A program made the translations under genes and the position numbers. Below are positions 78 through 13,129 of a DNA stretch of 64,000 nt, piece after piece. Under the pieces are notes generated by a model. That model saw only the letters and a program-made list of their open reading frames with translations. It was not told the DNA's origin and made no database searches. Location of the stretch: the IMG/VR virus record IMGVR_UViG_3300046092_000062, positions 62,001 to 126,000 of that record. One strand, written 5' to 3'. Each line of letters begins with the position of its first letter. Position 1 is the stretch's first letter.

Positions 78-249
78 AAATTTCATATCCTGTACGAACG
101 GCAGCTCTTGCTTTTCAGGATAATCTCGTGTAAAATGTTTAACACAAGAGAAGCTCTTAGCATCGGAATAAGTTCCGTTGCCGAGTTTAAGTAATTCATC
201 GAATCCAGGATTGGGTTTGCTCATACTGTATTTAACACAAGGAAACAAA

Positions 250-753
250 ATGCCCTGGATCCAAAACGTAGCACGTAGCGATGTCACTAAAGGGTTTCAC
301 ATCAACCCCGGTGATAACGCTATGTTGATTCAAATCGTTGACTGCGGCAGCGAATTTCCTACTCCCCTTTACAAGTTTAAAGAAGCTCATCAATTTGAGT
401 TTTTAGATGTAGAGGAAAAGGACTACGTTCTTGAAGAAGAAATGAAGTGCAGTCACGAACAAGCCGCAGAGCTAGTTCGTTTGTTGCAACATGCACTAGA
501 GAATCGCATGAACGTTATTGTTCATTGCCATGCTGGTGTTTGCCGCAGCGGTGCAGTATGTGAAGTTGGAGTCATGCTTGGCTTTGATGACACTGAAGCA
601 TTTCGTGCTCCTAACTTGCTAGTCAAGCATCGCATGATGAAGCAGCTGGGTTGGACGTATGATGAGAACGAAGAGCCAACGATCAATGGTCAACCATATC
701 AATACAGCGCAGGCGGGATCATTTTACCCCCAAGTCACGAAGGTGATATTTAA
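250..753 (+). CDS. Cys-dependent protein tyrosine/dual-specificity phosphatase
   Basis: HC-x5-R active-site loop VHCHAGVCRSG; start moved to ATG 250 after AAGGA RBS. Confidence 0.8.
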   Translation: MPWIQNVARSDVTKGFHINPGDNAMLIQIVDCGSEFPTPLYKFKEAHQFEFLDVEEKDYVLEEEMKCSHEQAAELVRLLQHALENRMNVIVHCHAGVCRSGAVCEVGVMLGFDDTEAFRAPNLLVKHRMMKQLGWTYDENEEPTINGQPYQYSAGGIILPPSHEGDI

Positions 754-1749: not shown

Positions 1750-1763
1750 AAAGGAAAATTGAC

Positions 1764-1787
1764 ATGAAACGTTCAGGTAAACGATAG
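1764..1787 (+). promoter_or_regulatory. putative 7-codon leader peptide MKRSGKR-TAG followed by two hairpins
   Basis: AAGGAA RBS at 1751-1756, ATG 1764, TAG 1785-1787; stem 1787-1795/1815-1823 and stem 1823-1828/1838-1843. Confidence 0.45.
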
Positions 1788-1849
1788 TGTCATCCTAGAC
1801 CCCCGTATGGTCCTGGATGGCACGTAAAAGAAAAATATTTACGATCCAT

Positions 1850-1924
1850 CCACAGCAAACTTTGCTGGCGAAGTACCCGGCTCTTACCCGGACTAACAGA
1901 GTTCGATTCTCTGGCTGTGGACCA
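1850..1924 (+). tRNA. atypical tRNA-Lys(CTT)
   Basis: Acceptor CCACAGC/GCTGTGG + A + CCA; anticodon arm CCGG-ctCTTac-CCGG; canonical T-arm; A8-A9 instead of T8-A9 and odd D-loop. Confidence 0.7.
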
Positions 1925-1927
1925 TAT

Positions 1928-2002
1928 GGGGGTATAACTTAGCGGCTAAAGTATCTGGCTTTTAACCAGAGAACCAGAGTTCGATTCTCTGTGCCCCTAC
2001 CA
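1928..2002 (+). tRNA. tRNA-Lys(TTT)
   Basis: TCTGG-ctTTTaa-CCAGA anticodon arm, T-arm, CCA. Confidence 0.92.
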
Positions 2003-2127
2003 TATCAAAGTACGCTAGTGCATTATAGTGAATCAGGTCGCTCCTGTGGAAGCTAAAACTGCATCAATTGCCCTGGAGGGAAAGGTCGACGGCTGCGGTT
2101 CGATTCCGTAGCGTACTTTGATATGGT
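1999..2127 (+). ncRNA. long-stem tRNA-like element A
   Basis: Perfect 19-bp inverted repeat 1999-2017/2109-2127 with T-arm GCGG-TTCGATT-CCGT abutting the 3' strand. Confidence 0.55.
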
Positions 2128-2134
2128 AAGGCAT

Positions 2135-2212
2135 GGAAGTATAGCTCAGTTGGTTTAGAGCATCGGACTTTTAATCCGAGGGTCCTGGGTTCGAGCCCCA
2201 GTGCTTCTACCA
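2135..2212 (+). tRNA. tRNA-Lys(TTT), second copy
   Basis: TCGGA-ctTTTaa-TCCGA anticodon arm, T-arm, CCA. Confidence 0.92.
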
Positions 2213-2282
2213 TATGCAAACACATTTTTCTGAACGCCAGTCATTTGCCGTGCAGAGTAGGTCAAGTGTGTTTACATATGGT
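2209..2282 (+). ncRNA. long-stem element B
   Basis: 19-position stem 2209-2227/2264-2282 with one C.A mismatch. Confidence 0.5.
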
Positions 2283-2412
2283 ACTAGAAGGAGTAATTAA
2301 CCTTCGCCATAATCGGGAGTCATGACCCGATGAACTCGTAGTCTTCTAATTGGTTAGGAAAGGCCCGTTATGGGGCTTAATGTTGGTTCGAGCCCAACCT
2401 ACAATGAGTTCG

Positions 2413-2509
2413 CATATATAAACATACTAGTCGGCGACTAAGCGTATTGCACGGTCTCTACGGAGTGAAAGGGTCAGTGGTTCGATTCCACATAGTGTGT
2501 TTTTATATG
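2413..2509 (+). ncRNA. long-stem tRNA-like element C
   Basis: CATATA-T-AAACATACTA / TAGTGTGTTT-T-TATATG stem with T-arm GTGG-TTCGATT-CCAC. Confidence 0.5.
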
Positions 2510-2642
2510 GTGCAAAAGTAATAAAGGGACTTGGGTGCCCAGAGTTTTGAAAACTCACACACTATAGTCGGCATGTGTGTCCACCGTGCATTAACCGACG
2601 TTTAAATAAAGCTAGGGCAAGCGCCAGTTAACGGTGGAGCCT

Positions 2643-2756
2643 ATATAGAAGTATTCTTGGCATAAGTCAAAGCGGGAGAAGAAGCCTAGTATCTGCAGAT
2701 GCGAAAGTTTCAGAGCTTGACTCCTCCTATGCTTGCATTTGAGAGTGCTTCTATAT
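2643..2756 (+). ncRNA. long-stem element D
   Basis: 16-bp stem 2643-2658/2741-2756 (3 G-U) followed by GGTA like elements A and B. Confidence 0.4.
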
Positions 2757-2857
2757 GGTATAGTGTAATGCGAATGCACGGGATCGCCACATAAGCCTTT
2801 GACGAGCGGTGGAACAAGGTTCAGGTGTGGTAGGAACCCACAATGCCATTTAAATTT

Positions 2858-2933
2858 GCCTTTATAGCTCAGTTGGTAGAGCAGAGGATTGAAAATCCTT
2901 GTGTCACTGGTTCGAATCCGGTTAGAGGCACCA
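2858..2933 (+). tRNA. tRNA-Phe(GAA)
   Basis: Canonical cloverleaf, ttGAAaa loop, CCA. Confidence 0.95.
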
Positions 2934-2948
2934 AATTATAGGAGTAGT

Positions 2949-4172
2949 ATGGCAAAGTTTTCGGAGAAGTTCTTCTGTCCTGCACCGTGGACAATGTTAT
3001 ACTATCATGCCAACTCTCCTAGTCCGTGCCACATGATTAAAAATTTAGAGATGGAAGCGACCCCATCTGAATATTTTAATAGCGAATGGCTTAAGAATAT
3101 AAAACAAGAAATGCAGCAAGGGATTGTTCCTGCTGCATGTTCTGGTTGTAAAGAGCGTGAGAGTCATGGACTAAAAAGCACACGCGGCGCTATTTGGAAT
3201 TACTATAATGTAGGACCTGAGCCCGAGTACGAAGATCAATGGTTCGCAAACAAGTTTACCGCAGACAGCCCAACCGTTCCAAAAAGAATTGAGCTTAGGT
3301 TTAGTAATCTATGTAATATGAAATGCAGGATGTGCGACGAAACATCTAGTTCCAGCTTTGCAGCAGAAAAAATTGAACATAAGATTAAACCAGACAAAAA
3401 CGGAAGTCATCTTGAGCATAGCGTGATACCCATCACAAAGATAGAAAACAATTCAATTGATGGCCTCATGGATACTGCCTTTCTAGCGTCAGTTCGAAAG
3501 GTATGTTTAACCGGTGGCGAACCATTTTTAATAAAAGAATATTACAGCTATCTAGATTACTTAATAGACAACGGTTTTAACAAAACACTAGACGTAGAAT
3601 TGTTTACAAATTGCAGTGTATATAATCCATTGTTTATTGATCGACTTAGTAAATTTAAAACAGTTCAAATGGTGATGAGCATCGATGCTGTGGGCAAAGC
3701 GGCTGAATATATTCGTAGTGGAACCGATTGGCCTAAAGTGGAAGCCAATGTGCTTCGACTAAATCAACTAGCAGCTCCATTTAAAATGGAAGTTACAACT
3801 GCCATATCTGCATACAGCCTAATGGACTTTGCAGAGACTGCACGATTTCTAATGAGGTTGTACACCGAAAACAACACCATTGGCGTAAAATGTTACAACG
3901 TAACTTCGCCTCCGGGTATGCACTTTAATAATCTGCCTAAGCCGTTGAGAATACAAGCAATAGATCAAATCGACAAGGCAGTAGAGATTCTAACAGCACC
4001 AAACTATTTGGTACTAGTTACAGAGTTGTTAAACGTGAAACACGCATTGACTACTTCGTCCCCGGATACACCACTGGCATTCTTTGACTATACTAAGAAG
4101 TACGACACCATTAGGGGAGAGTCGTTTGCGGAAGTGTTTTTAACATCTCCTGACAGCACAGATTACTTGTAA
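2949..4172 (+). CDS. radical SAM protein with Cys-rich (twitch/SPASM-like) N-terminus
   Basis: CNMKCRMC (CxxxCxxC), LTGGEPF motif; start moved to ATG 2949 after GGAG. Confidence 0.88.
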   Translation: MAKFSEKFFCPAPWTMLYYHANSPSPCHMIKNLEMEATPSEYFNSEWLKNIKQEMQQGIVPAACSGCKERESHGLKSTRGAIWNYYNVGPEPEYEDQWFANKFTADSPTVPKRIELRFSNLCNMKCRMCDETSSSSFAAEKIEHKIKPDKNGSHLEHSVIPITKIENNSIDGLMDTAFLASVRKVCLTGGEPFLIKEYYSYLDYLIDNGFNKTLDVELFTNCSVYNPLFIDRLSKFKTVQMVMSIDAVGKAAEYIRSGTDWPKVEANVLRLNQLAAPFKMEVTTAISAYSLMDFAETARFLMRLYTENNTIGVKCYNVTSPPGMHFNNLPKPLRIQAIDQIDKAVEILTAPNYLVLVTELLNVKHALTTSSPDTPLAFFDYTKKYDTIRGESFAEVFLTSPDSTDYL

Positions 4173-5271: not shown

Positions 5272-6183
5272 ATGCAACATAATTTTTTACCATGTAAATA
5301 TCCAATTATTTGTGCCCCGATGAATAGAGTGTCGGACGTTAAGCTAGCACTTGCAGTTCATAGAGCTGGGTGCTTGCCGAGCCTTGTGGTCCACAATCAT
5401 GATGAATCTGAATTAGCTAACGATGTGGCTAAGATTGTGAACGAAATGAAAGAGTTCACAGAGCTGTCGGGATCAAGCGATTTTATACTTGCACTTAGAT
5501 CAGATTTTTTATTAAAAGATACCAAGCTGCTCCCTGCGATGTTAAAGTACAGGCCTGCGTATGTTGAATTCTTTGACAATATTGATTGGTCTGACATAAA
5601 GGTGGTCAACCTTATTAAGCTGCTTAGAACATACAGAATTAAAATAATCTATAAAATACTTGCACCTAGAATATTGGGCAAGTTAGTGGAATTTGTTGAC
5701 GCTATTGACGTTAAGGGCCCTGATGCCGCTGCCCGTGTGAATACCACAACTACTACTAGTTTAGTAGATCGGATTAAGCAACTGAAATCCGCTAATCCAC
5801 ATTTGCACATTATTGCATCTGGTGGTATGTCATCGCAACAGGATGTGCAGGCATGTATTGACGCTGGCGCAAGTGCAGTGGCATTGGGCACAGTATTTGC
5901 CATGTCAGAAGAGTCGTCGATTTCAGTTGAGACAAAAATGAAAATGATTGAATCAACATTCTCACAAGTTGTGAACATTGGCGAAGCCCAACAAAATGCG
6001 TTAGTGTTTACAAACGAAAAAGATGTTGACGGCAACCACACTGTGGGACTAGAACTTGGTATAAAAAGCCCAGTCGCTGGTCATGTGTTTGTGGGGAAAG
6101 CAATTGATTCAATTGACTCAATTAAAACAGTGGAAACAATCGTGTCGGAGCTAACTGGGGTAACTGATGCAAAAACCCGATGA
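5272..6183 (+). CDS. nitronate monooxygenase / FabK-like FMN TIM-barrel oxidoreductase
   Basis: YPIICAPM N-terminus, IIASGGM and AVALGTVF FMN-binding motifs. Confidence 0.75.
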   Translation: MQHNFLPCKYPIICAPMNRVSDVKLALAVHRAGCLPSLVVHNHDESELANDVAKIVNEMKEFTELSGSSDFILALRSDFLLKDTKLLPAMLKYRPAYVEFFDNIDWSDIKVVNLIKLLRTYRIKIIYKILAPRILGKLVEFVDAIDVKGPDAAARVNTTTTTSLVDRIKQLKSANPHLHIIASGGMSSQQDVQACIDAGASAVALGTVFAMSEESSISVETKMKMIESTFSQVVNIGEAQQNALVFTNEKDVDGNHTVGLELGIKSPVAGHVFVGKAIDSIDSIKTVETIVSELTGVTDAKTR

Positions 6184-7031: not shown

Positions 7032-8240
7032 ATGATTAATTTAAAACTAGGATATTACTCATGCAACGGAGTCACGTTCGATTCTAAGATTGCTGCATGT
7101 GTGTATTCTGTGCAGCACAATAACGCATTAGTTACGTGGACATTCAACGACCGAGAGTTTAATCAGCACAACTGGACACAAGAACCTGACCTAACACTGG
7201 ATCAATTGTATGATATTAGATCAAAGCAGCTAAGAGATCAGTACGACTATGTTATATTGAGCTACAGCGGCGGCGCCGACAGTCACAATATCCTAATGAG
7301 CTTTATTCGTCAAGGCCTCCATATAGACGAGATTGTGGTAAACACAACTGAGAAAGCTAGTGCAAGATTCACAGAGTTAGATAAAAACAATCTTGACCCC
7401 CGCAATGCAGGAGCAGAGCATGTGTTTCAGACGTTGCCTAGACTACGTGAAATTCAGGGATTGATCCCTAAAACAAAGATTAGTGTGTTGGATTTGTCGG
7501 ATCATCTATTTGAGAGTTTTTCAAAAGCCGATGATGCTAGCTGGGTATTAGAAAAGCGCGAAAGCCTAAACCCAGCTGGAGTAACACGGTTTAATTATCT
7601 GCACTTTGATCAATTGCGCAAACAGTTTGATAAAGATAAAAAAATTGCATTAGTGCTAGGAATCGAAAAGCCCAGGGTGTTTATTAGACACGGACAGTTG
7701 GTACTACGGTTTACAGACCGTGCGGCCAACATTGTTACTGTAGCAGAACACGTTAAAGAATACACAAATAGCACAGTAGAATTCTTCTACTGGAGTCCAG
7801 ATGCAGTGCCAGTGGTTATCAAACAAGCGCACACTATCAAGCGATGGCTTGAGGCTAATCCAGACAAACAGCATCTCTGGGACGTTGACACACTAACACC
7901 GGAGATGGTGAGACTAGTGCATGAGCGAGTGTACAGACCACTGCTATACACTACGTGGGACAACAGTTGGTGGCAATCAAACAAAGCAGTTAACGATTGG
8001 ACAAGCGAGTTTGACCAGTGGTTTAAGGATGGGTACAGTGATACTCGTGCTTACCAAGTGTGGGCAGAGGGTATTGAGTATGTTCGTGAAATTTTGCATC
8101 CTTACATAAACACTACTCATCTTGTTAATGGTCAAGCAGACGGCCTTGACATATTTGTTAAAGAGTACTTAATTGGACCAGTGAAAAATCTTTGTCCAGA
8201 ATTAAAGAATAAACTGTATAGGCATTTGCAAAATAAATAA
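7032..8240 (+). CDS. PP-loop (adenine nucleotide alpha hydrolase) family ATPase
   Basis: ILSYSGGADS PP-loop motif. Confidence 0.78.
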   Translation: MINLKLGYYSCNGVTFDSKIAACVYSVQHNNALVTWTFNDREFNQHNWTQEPDLTLDQLYDIRSKQLRDQYDYVILSYSGGADSHNILMSFIRQGLHIDEIVVNTTEKASARFTELDKNNLDPRNAGAEHVFQTLPRLREIQGLIPKTKISVLDLSDHLFESFSKADDASWVLEKRESLNPAGVTRFNYLHFDQLRKQFDKDKKIALVLGIEKPRVFIRHGQLVLRFTDRAANIVTVAEHVKEYTNSTVEFFYWSPDAVPVVIKQAHTIKRWLEANPDKQHLWDVDTLTPEMVRLVHERVYRPLLYTTWDNSWWQSNKAVNDWTSEFDQWFKDGYSDTRAYQVWAEGIEYVREILHPYINTTHLVNGQADGLDIFVKEYLIGPVKNLCPELKNKLYRHLQNK

Positions 8241-8613: not shown

Positions 8614-8690
8614 GGCTCTCTAGTTCCAATTGGCAGAACATCGGATTCCAAATCCGAGTGTTGGGGGTTCGAATCCCTCGGGGGTCGCCA
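8614..8690 (+). tRNA. tRNA-Trp(CCA)
   Basis: TCGGA-ttCCAaa-TCCGA arm, G73-CCA; D-stem GTTC/GAAC. Confidence 0.93.
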
Positions 8691-8695
8691 ATATA

Positions 8696-9145
8696 ATGAA
8701 ATCAAAATTCTCCGATTCCCAATTACGCACAATCACGAAAGTGGTTACATACCGCGTGATTATCACATGTAGTCACATCATCAATGGGTTTATTGTTAGT
8801 GGTAGTCTTGCTCTTGGATTGCAAATTGCAGGCCTAGCAGCAGTAATTAACAGTTTGTTATTTTGGCTACACGAGCGCATGTGGAATAGGCTACAATGGA
8901 AACGTCTCCATTTAAACAGTTCTACGTTCGTAGAAACCAATCCTAGAAGCATCAGTAAGATATTAACTTGGCGCATTTTCTCAATGTCTAGTAATTTTCT
9001 CATCCCTTACTTGATAACTGGATCATGGGGATCAGCAGCGGCATTCCTTGGGATAGCAGTAATAGTTAACATGGCTCTATACTATCTACATGAACGAGTG
9101 TGGAACATAGTTAAGTGGGGTAAACAGGTCAACGGCCTTTGGTGA
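8696..9145 (+). CDS. membrane protein with two tandem DUF2061-like repeats
   Basis: RTITKVVTYR...LHERMWNRLQW and RSISKILTWR...LHERVWNIVKW; start moved to ATG 8696. Confidence 0.72.
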   Translation: MKSKFSDSQLRTITKVVTYRVIITCSHIINGFIVSGSLALGLQIAGLAAVINSLLFWLHERMWNRLQWKRLHLNSSTFVETNPRSISKILTWRIFSMSSNFLIPYLITGSWGSAAAFLGIAVIVNMALYYLHERVWNIVKWGKQVNGLW

Positions 9146-9242: not shown

Positions 9243-9266
9243 ACAAACTGTTCATAAAAGAGTTAG

Positions 9267-9454
9267 CCATGAGCAAGGCAGCTTTCTGTTACCAGTGGTA
9301 GGCGTAGTATCAATAATCTTGCAATTAGTGGCCTGTGTTTAAGTATCGGGAACCCCCGAGGCAACAAAACGATTTTAAAATTGAGAACCGTTTCGAGCCC
9401 ACAACGTGTGGTCTAGGTAGGCATTCGCAAGATGCTGCTTGATCTAGATCATGG
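9267..9454 (+). ncRNA. unidentified structured ncRNA (about 190 nt)
   Basis: Nested stems 9267-9272/9449-9454, 9274-9282/9434-9441, 9316-9322/9427-9433, 9331-9335/9418-9422 plus internal hairpins; no ORF; own promoter. Confidence 0.5.
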
Positions 9455-9469
9455 TTGCCCATCTGATCA

Positions 9470-10105
9470 ATGGGGACCAAGTGGTCCGCGGTTGAAAAAC
9501 AGAATTACATGGCTAACCCTTTTATGAATACATTAACGTTTCAGACCCCGGTACGTATAGTTAATAACTGGGATAAAACCACACAAGTAGCAAAGCACTG
9601 CATCGATCTAGTAAAGAGTCAATCGGCCAGTATCACTAGGGAATACAAGTACAGCGATTACGGATATCACTATGAACTAGGATCAACTGGCACAGTTAGT
9701 CACATCACTAACGGTAGTGCAGAATGGTATTCAGTGACTGGTAAGCTAATAGAATCTACCATGCGCTTTTTGCCGCTAATGCTAGATGACCTAGCAGACC
9801 TTGACCCTACGTTTGCTAGCATTAACTACATGGTGGGCAATGGCGCAGAGCATAGGGATCACGAAAGTCAGCAAACTGGGTTCAATTATTTTTTTGCTGA
9901 TTGTGACAGCACTACCTACGCAAGAAACGCAGACATCTGCGAATCCTATCCTAGCGTAAAAGACACAGGGTGGATCCTTGATATCCAACAACTACACAGC
10001 ATCTCAAATACAAACGAACGCATTTGGTTTAACCTTAGATTTGGTAAACCCTTTGCATATTGCAGAGATTGGTTTGCAGATCATTTGGTATTAACTTATG
10101 AATAA
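9470..10105 (+). CDS. hypothetical, possible 2OG-Fe(II)/cupin oxygenase
   Basis: HRD...LHS facial-triad-like spacing. Confidence 0.5.
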   Translation: MGTKWSAVEKQNYMANPFMNTLTFQTPVRIVNNWDKTTQVAKHCIDLVKSQSASITREYKYSDYGYHYELGSTGTVSHITNGSAEWYSVTGKLIESTMRFLPLMLDDLADLDPTFASINYMVGNGAEHRDHESQQTGFNYFFADCDSTTYARNADICESYPSVKDTGWILDIQQLHSISNTNERIWFNLRFGKPFAYCRDWFADHLVLTYE

Positions 10106-11398: not shown

Positions 11399-11464
11399 TT
11401 GACACTTAATGAAACTCTTGTTATAATAGATACATGTTAAGAAATTAACAAACGTTCTTTAAAA
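11399..11464 (+). promoter_or_regulatory. consensus sigma70 promoter plus boxA-like antitermination site
   Basis: TTGACA(11399)-17-TATAAT(11422); CGTTCTTTAAAA at 11453-11464 resembles rrn boxA TGCTCTTTAACA. Confidence 0.8.
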
Positions 11465-11465
11465 A

Positions 11466-11750
11466 TTTGTTTTGATGTAAAGTAAGCAGGCGTACCACGC
11501 TAATAGGTTGCGTGACTCTTGTCGAAAATTTGGTCCAGATAGAAAGCTGGGAACTCTTGAGTAGTCTGTAAGCGGCTACTGTGGCGTCTAACACCTATGA
11601 GTTAGAAACGATCTGTTCCACGTAGCAATACGCAGGAAGAATGATTGCAATAGAGTAGAGTAACGCTCTACCGGTTGCATGAGGGTCAACTGAAAGACGC
11701 AAGTCTTACCCGTTACCTTGTAACCAGGTAAAAAGAGGCATCAAAATAAA
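11466..11750 (+). ncRNA. unidentified multi-hairpin ncRNA (285 nt)
   Basis: 12-bp closing stem 11466-11477/11739-11750; at least 6 internal hairpins, several with GNRA loops; no ORF. Confidence 0.6.
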
Positions 11751-11764
11751 TTTCTAAATAACTG

Positions 11765-11838: not shown

Positions 11839-11855
11839 TAGATACGTATAAGAAG

Positions 11856-11970
11856 TTCTTATACACATGCACATAAATGCGTAGGCCACGCAGATATGGT
11901 TGGATTCATAGCTTGGGCTATTGCCCAGGTTGGCAGGTTCGAAACCTGTGAGTGTGCAGTTGTATAAGAA
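11856..11970 (+). ncRNA. long-stem tRNA-like element E
   Basis: TTCTTATACA/TGTATAAGAA and TGCACAT/GTGTGCA stems, T-arm GCAGG-TTCGAAA-CCTGT, D-like and variable-like hairpins, no CCA. Confidence 0.5.
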
Positions 11971-11974
11971 TTTA

Positions 11975-12875
11975 GGGCAGTTTAATGTCCTGCAAAGAGT
12001 ATGGTTCGCCCAGCTTGATGCGAAGAATAACTGTGGTGACACAGCCAAAGGAGGTATGCCTACATAACTCCGCTAGCAATAGTTCATTTAGACAAGCCTG
12101 CTCACTCCTGTGAGGGAGCGTTCACTCAGCGACGGGTGGATGTAACAGTGACGCAAAGTGCATAGGGAAGAACGTTTGCTTACAAGCCTGAGATTGCATC
12201 AAGGGGAACTTGAGTAGATGGAAAGTAACAGGTGGTGCTGACTTCTATGCGAAACCAACTTTGTTAATTGGTATGAGAAAGGGTAGTGTATTGGTTCGAA
12301 GGGTTGCACCTAAGAGCTCGTATGCAGTTTTAGTGGTTGGTGGACGTAGTAATACGAACATTGGTCGCAAAAGACGACTGAGTAGCTCGCAAGGCAAAAG
12401 GTACGTGGTGTGTTGTATTGTGTATTCCAAAAGATTATGCAGCAACTGAGTCAGCACATCGCAGTAGGTTGATATAGTTCATTGGTAGAACATCTGTCTC
12501 TTAAACAGAATGCGGTGGGTTCAATTCCCACTATCATTACAAAACGCAAAGACTGACTCGGTCGTATGTGAAAAGCATCTAATACTTGAGCCGCAAGGTA
12601 ATCAAGTCAGACGTAACTCGCAAGGTGAAATCTGTTTATGCAGGAAGTTTCGTAGCTACTTAGCGGTGGTGAATGGCTCTAAAGGTCAACGGGATAGAAA
12701 GCGTAGAATAGCATACGGCGACAAGACTACTGCCTGTCTTTAAAAACGGCGATGCTGACAGCAGACTAGACTACTATGCAAATAGGGTTTAGTGGAAGTC
12801 GGAAGAAAGTAGACTCGCAAGGTTTACAATAATGTCCGAGGTGTTGTTAGGTTAGGATGTATTCTCAGTCCGCCA
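11975..12875 (+). ncRNA. probable GOLLD large ncRNA (about 900 nt)
   Basis: ORF-free, GNRA (GCAA/GAAA) hairpin-rich, inside a phage tRNA cluster; segments such as GAAAGTAACAGGTGGTGCTGAC and 3' TATTCTCAG match my recollection of GOLLD; ends approximate. Confidence 0.65.
12468..12539 (+). tRNA. tRNA-Lys(CTT)-like module embedded in the large ncRNA, no CCA
   Basis: D-arm GTTC-attggta-GAAC, anticodon arm TCTGT-ctCTTaa-ACAGA, T-arm GTGGG-TTCAATT-CCCAC; weak acceptor, ends ACAA. Confidence 0.7.
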
Positions 12876-12969
12876 ACTTATATGCAAACACATTAGTAAA
12901 AGTCTGTAAAAGGACGAAGCAACTGACTCTGTAATAGGAGCTGTTTGCTCAGTGTGTTTACATATAAGT
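12876..12969 (+). ncRNA. long-stem element F
   Basis: ACTTATATG-C-AAACACATT / AGTGTGTTT-A-CATATAAGT, nearly the same stem as element B. Confidence 0.55.
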
Positions 12970-13056: not shown

Positions 13057-13129
13057 CTTATTTGAAAGCACATTTGTTCCTGAAAGATTTTACGGTTTGG
13101 ATGGTTCAGCAAATGTGTTTCCAAATAAG
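13057..13129 (+). ncRNA. long-stem element G
   Basis: CTTATTTG-A-AAGCACATTTG / CAAATGTGTTT-C-CAAATAAG. Confidence 0.5.

Follow-up and report, generated by a model that had tools for sequence, protein, structure and literature searches.

A conserved hairpin that pairs with the CCA end of tRNA-Lys(UUU) and certain other tRNAs in a giant freshwater phage and its uncultured relatives

Background

In the tRNA array of a giant freshwater phage, two tRNA-Lys(UUU) genes run without a gap into long inverted repeats that include the encoded CCA end of the tRNA. Are these helices real, are they found elsewhere, and how might the 3' end of such a tRNA be set free? The sequence examined (the window) is a stretch of 64,000 nucleotides, bases 62001-126000 of the 320,767-bp IMG/VR virus record IMGVR_UViG_3300046092_000062, and all coordinates below are window positions. 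The record carries 47 tRNA genes between 54 and 77 kb, a tmRNA, and an isolated suppressor tRNA(CUA). An earlier note, made from the sequence alone, described the two stems. It proposed that they mask the aminoacylation end in the precursor and act as a conditional maturation switch or reserve pool, perhaps released after host tRNA-Lys is destroyed.

Results

The two stems and their neighbors

ARAGORN and Rfam place three tRNAs in a row, surrounded by the following features, all on the plus strand.

1797-1813 (+), 5' leader strand that pairs with 1919-1935
1814-1852 (+), leader hairpin whose last 3 nt are the first 3 nt of tRNA-Lys(CUU)
1850-1924 (+), tRNA-Lys(CUU), whose ACCA (1921-1924) pairs with the leader sequence GUAUGGU
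1928-2002 (+), tRNA-Lys(UUU) copy 1 (66.2 bits), with a G1.U72 wobble and A73
1998-2128 (+), hairpin A, arms 1998-2017 and 2109-2128, with a T-arm-like hairpin (about 2094-2112) next to the 3' arm
2135-2212 (+), tRNA-Lys(UUU) copy 2 (70.1 bits)
2208-2283 (+), hairpin B, a typical member of the family described below, arms 2208-2227 and 2264-2283, whose interior continues as an irregular stem-loop

Stem A has 20 perfect base pairs with 91 nt between the arms. The helix given in the earlier note (1999-2017/2109-2127) is the same one without the U72:A pair. Stem B has 20 positions with one C.A mismatch (2217/2274, stem position 9 counted from A73) and one U.G wobble (position 17), and 36 nt lie between its arms. 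Both helices begin at U72/A73-C74-C75-A76 of the tRNA, which is joined to UGGU(A). Stem A folds at -54 kcal/mol (z = -5.1) and stem B at -29.6 kcal/mol (z = -5.4), and none of 200 shuffles folds as well in either case. The arms of A and B differ at 9 of the 19 positions from A73, with the core most diverged, yet both pair. The observation of the earlier note, including its remark on compensatory change, is therefore confirmed.

A family of hairpins

A generic stem search found four more copies in the window, which makes six.

2411-2510 (+), hairpin C, pairs 2413-2418/2504-2509 and 2420-2429/2493-2502, with a T-arm-like interior; not flush with a tRNA here
2641-2758 (+), hairpin D, arms 2641-2660 and 2739-2758, 20 bp including G.U pairs
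12876-12969 (+), hairpin E, arms almost identical to those of B but with the base reading ACUUAUAU/AUAUAAGU, starting 5 nt after the 3' end of a GOLLD RNA
13057-13129 (+), hairpin F, about 95 nt upstream of tRNA-Cys

Four more copies lie elsewhere in the phage genome, which gives at least 10. One of them starts at the ACCA of the isolated suppressor tRNA, 110 kb from the array, and lies between this tRNA and a downstream ORF. B, E, and F share nearly the same arms but have unrelated interiors. The T-arm-like interiors of A and C were considered as hidden tRNAs, but no cloverleaf is recognized there by ARAGORN, nor by Rfam (RF00005) at E<=10.

Eighty related loci (here and below, single related loci carry a number with L) were collected through the release-factor-like gene just upstream of the unit. 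They hold about 45 distinct family hairpins. In these loci, 27 of 530 distinct tRNAs have a helix of at least 16 bp starting exactly at N73, while only 3 of 1590 random start points do. Recurrence in relatives was the check that the earlier note had asked for, and the pairing recurs. Of the tRNA-Lys(UUU) genes in relatives, 17 of 19 carry the hairpin, against 19 of 523 other tRNAs. These counts are not phylogenetically independent, and part of the tRNA bias may be inherited synteny rather than repeated selection. The 5' edge is sharply registered. With a generic stem finder, 26 of 31 stems that start within -10..+40 nt of a tRNA end begin at N71-C74. The 3' edge lies loosely, from -6 to +14 nt of the next tRNA.

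Modules are gained, lost, and swapped at the same site. The interior of A is 94.5% identical in L002 and L003 only, and that of C is 100% identical in these two loci. L002 and L003 lack B plus the following element, and there the same module as C abuts tRNA-Lys(UUU) copy 2 and pairs with its ACCA. The homologue of D in L054 follows tRNA-Leu(UAG), flush with the ACCA. Contig joints 2226->2493 and 2413->2643 in related strains point the same way, and the repeated arms mediate deletions and module swaps between strains.

A two-arm pattern of the hairpin hit more than 120 IMG/VR contigs. In 72 of those loci, 62 of 80 sense-oriented hairpins start at the CCA of a called tRNA: Lys(UUU) 37, Gln(UUG) 10, Glu(UUC) 5, Leu(UAG) 5, and others 5. 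The pattern forces CCAUAU at the start, so this set speaks to which RNA lies upstream and not to whether a CCA is present. In most of the remaining cases the upstream RNA is not a tRNA but still ends in ACCA. One case is the 3' end of GOLLD in L131. The hairpin often fills the whole spacer between two tRNAs, and 42 of 80 have the next tRNA within -4..+15 nt. Most tRNAs of the same arrays, however, are separated by 3-10 nt spacers without any hairpin.

The same pattern occurs only 12 times in 596 Gb of bacterial genomes. Eight of these are phage-like tRNA arrays on short lake-MAG contigs, apparently mis-binned phage contigs, and four are not beside any tRNA and are taken as chance. A BLAST search of 1750-3000 against 50,697 deposited phage genomes matched only the tRNA segments, and no cultured relative was found. 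Rfam was searched at the gathering threshold and at E<=10 on the window, and at E<=0.5 or the gathering threshold on eleven related loci. No family fits the hairpins, and the stem gave only chance microRNA-like hits. No description of the motif was found in the searched literature either.

Anatomy of the helix

Counted from the tRNA, N72 is paired in 59% and N73 in 79% of copies. C74:G, C75:G, and A76:U follow, then three invariant A/U pairs and a fourth pair that varies and covaries. Position +5 is an A.C mismatch in 63% and paired in 30%. AAACACA then pairs with UGUGUUU, within about 10 further pairs (AAACACAUU with AGUGUGUUU), and position +13 is a U.G wobble in 74%. Pairing decays after +15. 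In short, the helix is 8 bp, a recurrent mismatch, then 10 bp. G-C pairs exist only at C74:G and C75:G, which are the only ones in the outer 12 bp, and at +9 and +11.

Only the stem is conserved, and the variable interior that closes the hairpin is apparently dispensable. Interiors range from 19 to 93 nt and are hypervariable in sequence and fold, although some are well-structured conserved RNAs. In one class the same interior module sits in different outer stems that always pair, and 19 pairs covary with double changes in seven sequences.

The hairpin is an RNA structure on the tRNA-sense strand. In the 9-bp core of 46 members found without any sequence pattern, there are about 70 G.U-type pairs against 2 A.C-type mismatches. 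The 3' arm is nearly invariant (GUGUGUUU), while the 5' arm varies through wobble-compatible transitions. Stem positions outside the CCA show several Watson-Crick pair types across the family, and all of the types occur at the variable positions. Where the discriminator is U, in tRNA-Arg(ACG) of L068 and tRNA-Ser(GGA) of L054, the closing base is A. This covariation holds for A73 and U73 tRNAs but not for most G73 tRNAs. For tRNA-Gln (nine G73 genes plus one A73), N73 pairs in only 2 of 10, and for most tRNA-Gln genes (G73) the helix starts at C74 instead.

The leader of tRNA-Lys(CUU)

The CCA of the adjacent tRNA-Lys(CUU) is also paired, but from the other side. Leader 1799-1813 pairs with 1919-1933, which comprises G71-G72-ACCA, the UAU spacer, and the first six nucleotides of tRNA-Lys(UUU) copy 1. 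The helix is found as an inverted repeat and forms in the MFE structure of 1760-2290. It is kept in 11 distinct relatives (84% of cells paired), and where the spacer is longer the leader is longer to match, with compensating indels in L044, L055, and L005. It excludes the acceptor-stem ends of both Lys tRNAs, whereas for hairpins A and B themselves no alternative partner was found. In constrained folds the clamped form scores -130.9 kcal/mol and the form with both acceptor stems enforced scores -113.4 kcal/mol, a difference of about 17 kcal/mol. Even with the acceptor stems enforced, the leader still pairs with ACCAUAU. These energies ignore tRNA tertiary structure and base modification.

Transcription and candidate partner genes

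The region is transcribed. In four freshwater metatranscriptomes that contain related sequence, the depth over 1600-2200 and 2800-3000 is many times that of the flanking coding regions, and contigs run from tRNA-Lys(UUU) across the junction into hairpin arms. These data are assembled contigs, in which ends near 2001-2004 coincide with strain branch points and not with RNA ends. No terminator-like site is found at any of the hairpins. The stems are A/U-rich and are followed by GGUA or the next tRNA, unlike the G+C-rich stem and U tract of an intrinsic terminator. A promoter reading of the arms had no support either. The 321-kb record encodes no RNase III, no RtcB, and no Ro60 (TROVE, PF05731), while the positive controls of the PF05731 search were found. 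For Y RNA and YrlA (RF00019 and RF02553), 1750-3000 gave no hit at E<=10, and L054 gave only 25-bit hits against a 69-bit threshold, at or abutting tRNA genes.

Discussion

A CCA clamp and its possible release

The two stems are copies of a phage-specific RNA element that is conserved in sequence, here called a CCA clamp. It fills the spacer after an RNA gene in the sense transcript of the array. In the primary transcript, the CCA and the A/U-rich nucleotides just after it are locked in a helix of roughly -30 kcal/mol or stronger. In the E. coli model, RNase E cuts 1-3 nt after the encoded CCA (PMC2190699), and this site is inside the helix here. The helix is too stable to open unaided. Therefore, a double-strand-specific endonuclease is the simplest way out, most likely RNase III of the host. 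E. coli RNase III holds about 22 bp, and the two pairs between its cuts are usually G-C (PMC6212723). The helix is flush with the acceptor stem and may stack on it. The acceptor stem (7 bp) plus ACCA:UGGU (4 bp) on one side and about 15 bp on the other fit this footprint, and the only G-C pairs in the outer half of the helix are those of the CCA, so that a cut right at the CCA is geometrically possible. In this view, the short A/U-rich outer duplex would melt after the cut, and exonucleases and RNase P would finish the neighboring ends.

The structure, its conservation and covariation, its RNA strand, its registration with the tRNA 3' end, and its bias to tRNA-Lys(UUU) are established by the analysis, while the enzyme, the cleavage itself and its position, and any regulatory use are inferred. 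The processing model is the best reading but remains tentative, somewhat less likely than not. RNase III has weak sequence specificity, so it does not explain the strong conservation of the stem (especially the 3' arm), the recurrent A.C mismatch, or the U.G wobble. The bias to Lys(UUU), Gln(UUG), and Glu(UUC) has no explanation in this model. Since most tRNAs of the arrays lack the hairpin, the element is not needed for ordinary processing.

Other readings

The interpretation of the earlier note is supported in part. That the end is masked until the stem is cut or unwound follows directly from the structure. Nothing shows, however, a conditional switch, a reserve pool, or a link to the loss of host tRNA-Lys. 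A regulated clamp, which would hold phage tRNA-Lys and a few other tRNAs as an inactive precursor pool and release it only under a condition such as the loss of host tRNA-Lys to an anticodon nuclease or a stage of infection, is possible but unlikely on present evidence. In its favor, Lys, Gln, and Glu account for 52 of the 62 tRNA-flush hairpins, and these are the tRNAs with 2-thiolated U34 that known anticodon nucleases attack. Both Lys tRNAs are clamped, the leader helix competes with the acceptor stem, the clamped fold scores better in silico, and the unit is conserved just downstream of the release-factor-like gene. On the other hand, no trigger, sensor, or alternative partner of the hairpin was found, and there is no conserved aptamer-like interior. 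The same hairpin follows other tRNAs, a suppressor tRNA, GOLLD, and other non-tRNA RNAs, which fits a general 3'-boundary or processing element better than a Lys-specific sensor.

About as doubtful is a protein-binding scaffold, in which the stem is the site of a phage or host protein, as Y-RNA stems bind Ro60, and tethers, protects, or delivers the adjacent tRNA or the variable module instead of being cleaved. The conservation of sequence and not only of structure over very diverse contigs, the position-specific mismatch and wobble, and the modular design of a constant stem with many interiors agree with it. No Ro60 gene, no Y RNA or YrlA match at threshold, and no candidate partner protein was found, and since a G/U-only arm is mutationally robust, part of its conservation may be neutral. 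Regulated release, protein binding, or both remain possible.

Less likely still is a structural insulator that keeps neighboring tRNAs from misfolding with each other, or a barrier to 3'-to-5' decay, with the CCA pairing as a by-product of tight packing. The high stability and the filling of whole spacers agree with it. Insulation, however, needs neither sequence conservation, nor strict registration at N72/N73, nor covariation of the closing base with the discriminator, and a barrier flush with the CCA would block normal 3' trimming rather than help it. A DNA-level palindromic cassette (MITE-like) targeting tRNA 3' ends is the least likely, despite the terminal inverted repeats, variable interiors, and module swaps, because mismatches are strand-biased towards G.U, stem positions covary (which protein-recognized repeats need not do), the flanks are complementary and not target-site duplications, and the element is stably orthologous after tRNA-Lys(UUU) across a wide clade.

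Comparison with known systems

RNase III processing stems are found as leader-trailer helices around 16S and 23S rRNA, as R sites of T7 early transcripts, and in the T4 tRNA cluster. Like them, the element has about 20 bp of nearly continuous helix (19-20 bp from N72/N73, with one central mismatch in most copies and none in A) and lies between stable RNA genes of one transcript or between a tRNA and an ORF. Only the stem matters, and mismatches occur inside it. But it is a hairpin after the gene, with the tRNA-Lys(CUU) leader helix as the exception. It starts inside the mature tRNA, is strongly conserved in sequence, and is attached to a few tRNA species only, and its cleavage is only inferred. 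In standard bacterial pre-tRNA maturation, the RNase E cut is followed by exonucleases and then RNase P (PMC2190699). The CCA is likewise encoded here and followed by A/U-rich nucleotides (UAU), but the RNase E site and the CCA are double-stranded, so this pathway cannot start as such.

In the TMERs of murine gammaherpesvirus 68, a tRNA-like element is followed directly by pre-miRNA hairpins, separated by tRNase Z. There too a viral tRNA runs without a spacer into a ~20-bp hairpin whose end is defined by tRNA-processing geometry. However, that is a eukaryotic virus using the Dicer pathway, the hairpin does not pair with the CCA, the tRNA lacks an encoded CCA, and there is no sequence relationship. 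The T-box discriminator UGGN and the GGU of the RNase P RNA P15 loop also pair with tRNA 3' ends. They act in trans on a free end over 2-4 bp, while here the pairing is in cis, opens a 19-bp helix, and exists before the end is made. No T-box match was found in Rfam. Y RNA and YrlA have a terminal stem bound by Ro60 and a tRNA-like module, and the clamp similarly encloses variable modules, some with T-arm-like hairpins (A, C, L052, L116, L138). Here the T-arm abuts the terminal stem as in a real tRNA, unlike YrlA, and the stem sequence is unrelated.

Significance

Phage tRNA arrays are usually read as lists of tRNA genes. Here the spacers carry a conserved, abundant RNA motif that takes hold of the functional 3' end of the tRNA. 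The motif gives a simple substrate for asking how a base-paired CCA end is matured, a searchable signature, not in Rfam, that marks phage tRNA arrays in metagenomes, and a set of unknown structured RNAs enclosed by the same stem. A further, rather unlikely possibility is that the clamp is a dedicated phage device with two possible uses, which may combine. It may make maturation of Lys-UUU, Gln-UUG, and Glu-UUC, the trio attacked by anticodon nucleases, depend on one dsRNA-cleaving step, which would be a gated supply of replacement tRNAs. Or it may use the acceptor stem as half of an RNase III site, so that a single cut after A76 yields the finished CCA-3'OH end without RNase E or exonucleases. 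Either use would be a new route of tRNA 3'-end formation in bacteria and their viruses. If the motif governs release of tRNA-Lys(UUU) and its kin, it adds a processing layer to how large phages supply tRNAs, possibly in the contest with tRNA-cleaving host defences.

Genes and promoter-like sites around the tRNA-Lys pair

The tRNA-Lys pair lies just downstream of a release-factor-like gene, and this order is always kept. The features of this region of the window are as follows.

1078-1749: release-factor-like gene with PCRF and RF-1 domains, a GGQ motif and a PxT-like PPT motif
1183-1185: in-frame TGA of this gene
1556-1584: sigma-70-type promoter match, 12 of 12 with an extended TG
1759-1788: sigma-70-type promoter match, 10 of 12

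The in-frame TGA, which is kept in 77 of 77 relatives, is found at what would be a conserved Trp position in RF1/RF2. While the first promoter match lies inside the release-factor-like gene, the second would start transcription close to the leader strand that pairs with the tRNA-Lys junction.

Other genes are interspersed in the array, at window positions 178-753, 2949-4172, 5272-6183, 7032-8240, and 8630-9145. These are a dual-specificity-phosphatase-like protein, a radical SAM protein, an NMO/IMPDH-type FMN barrel, a protein with an SGGxDS PP-loop-like motif and no Pfam hit, and a DUF2061 membrane protein.

Other structured RNAs associated with the hairpins

Hairpins of the conserved family are also found next to RNAs other than ordinary tRNAs. 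At window 12405-12871 there is a GOLLD RNA (RF02032, 198.8 bits) with tRNA-Lys(CUU) embedded in it at 12468-12540, and a family hairpin starts 5 nt after its 3' end. The same order, GOLLD and then hairpin, occurs in L131 (handles beginning with L denote loci of relatives), where GOLLD is located at 2633-3098 and the hairpin starts from about 3100. Another example is found outside the window, at genome positions 187515-187699, where an isolated suppressor tRNA(CUA) has a TTGACT-17-TATAAT promoter-like site upstream and an 18-bp stem starting at A73 downstream, followed by a ribosome-binding site and an ORF. A tmRNA is located at 180876-181270 of the genome.

Two unannotated conserved RNAs lie between the hairpins, at window 2283-2410 and 2759-2857. 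The first has a T-arm (2383-2399) and a tRNA-like outline, although it is not called by ARAGORN or Rfam, and it is conserved in 8 relatives. The second lies just before tRNA-Phe and is conserved in 6 relatives. In relatives, a conserved structured RNA of about 90 nt is found inside the family stem (L068:3141-3271, L054:2470-2600, L046:1223-1353, L004:3001-3128, L024:445-567, and others). It shows 19 pairs with compensatory changes in seven sequences and has no Rfam match.

In relatives, real tRNAs (Met, Asn, Gly, Gly, and His, at L004:4009-4105, L005:1005-1108 and 9880-9991, L008:2233-2330, and L016:555-652) are enclosed by leader-trailer helices 18-22 bp long, which extend the acceptor stem and include the CC of the 3' end. 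In the tRNA region of the window, other long inverted repeats of 21-23 bp, with 79-259 nt between the arms, exist at 9249-9530, 11458-11758, and 11853-11973; these do not belong to the family consensus. The tRNA arrays of hairpin-bearing relatives also include group I introns and permuted tmRNAs (L087:6941-7138, L082:926-1123, L088:8496-8776, and L131:812-1112).

Apparent loss and exchange of hairpin modules

When window 2213-2410 was compared with L002:5339-5441 and L003:6852-6954, relatives whose release-factor-like protein is 95% identical, these were found to lack hairpin B (the hairpin that follows tRNA-Lys(UUU) copy 2 in the window) and the following RNA. In them, hairpin C, another member of the family, abuts tRNA-Lys(UUU) copy 2. 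RNA-seq contigs of related strains show the joints 2226->2493 and 2413->2643. The repeated arms appear to mediate deletions and module swaps.
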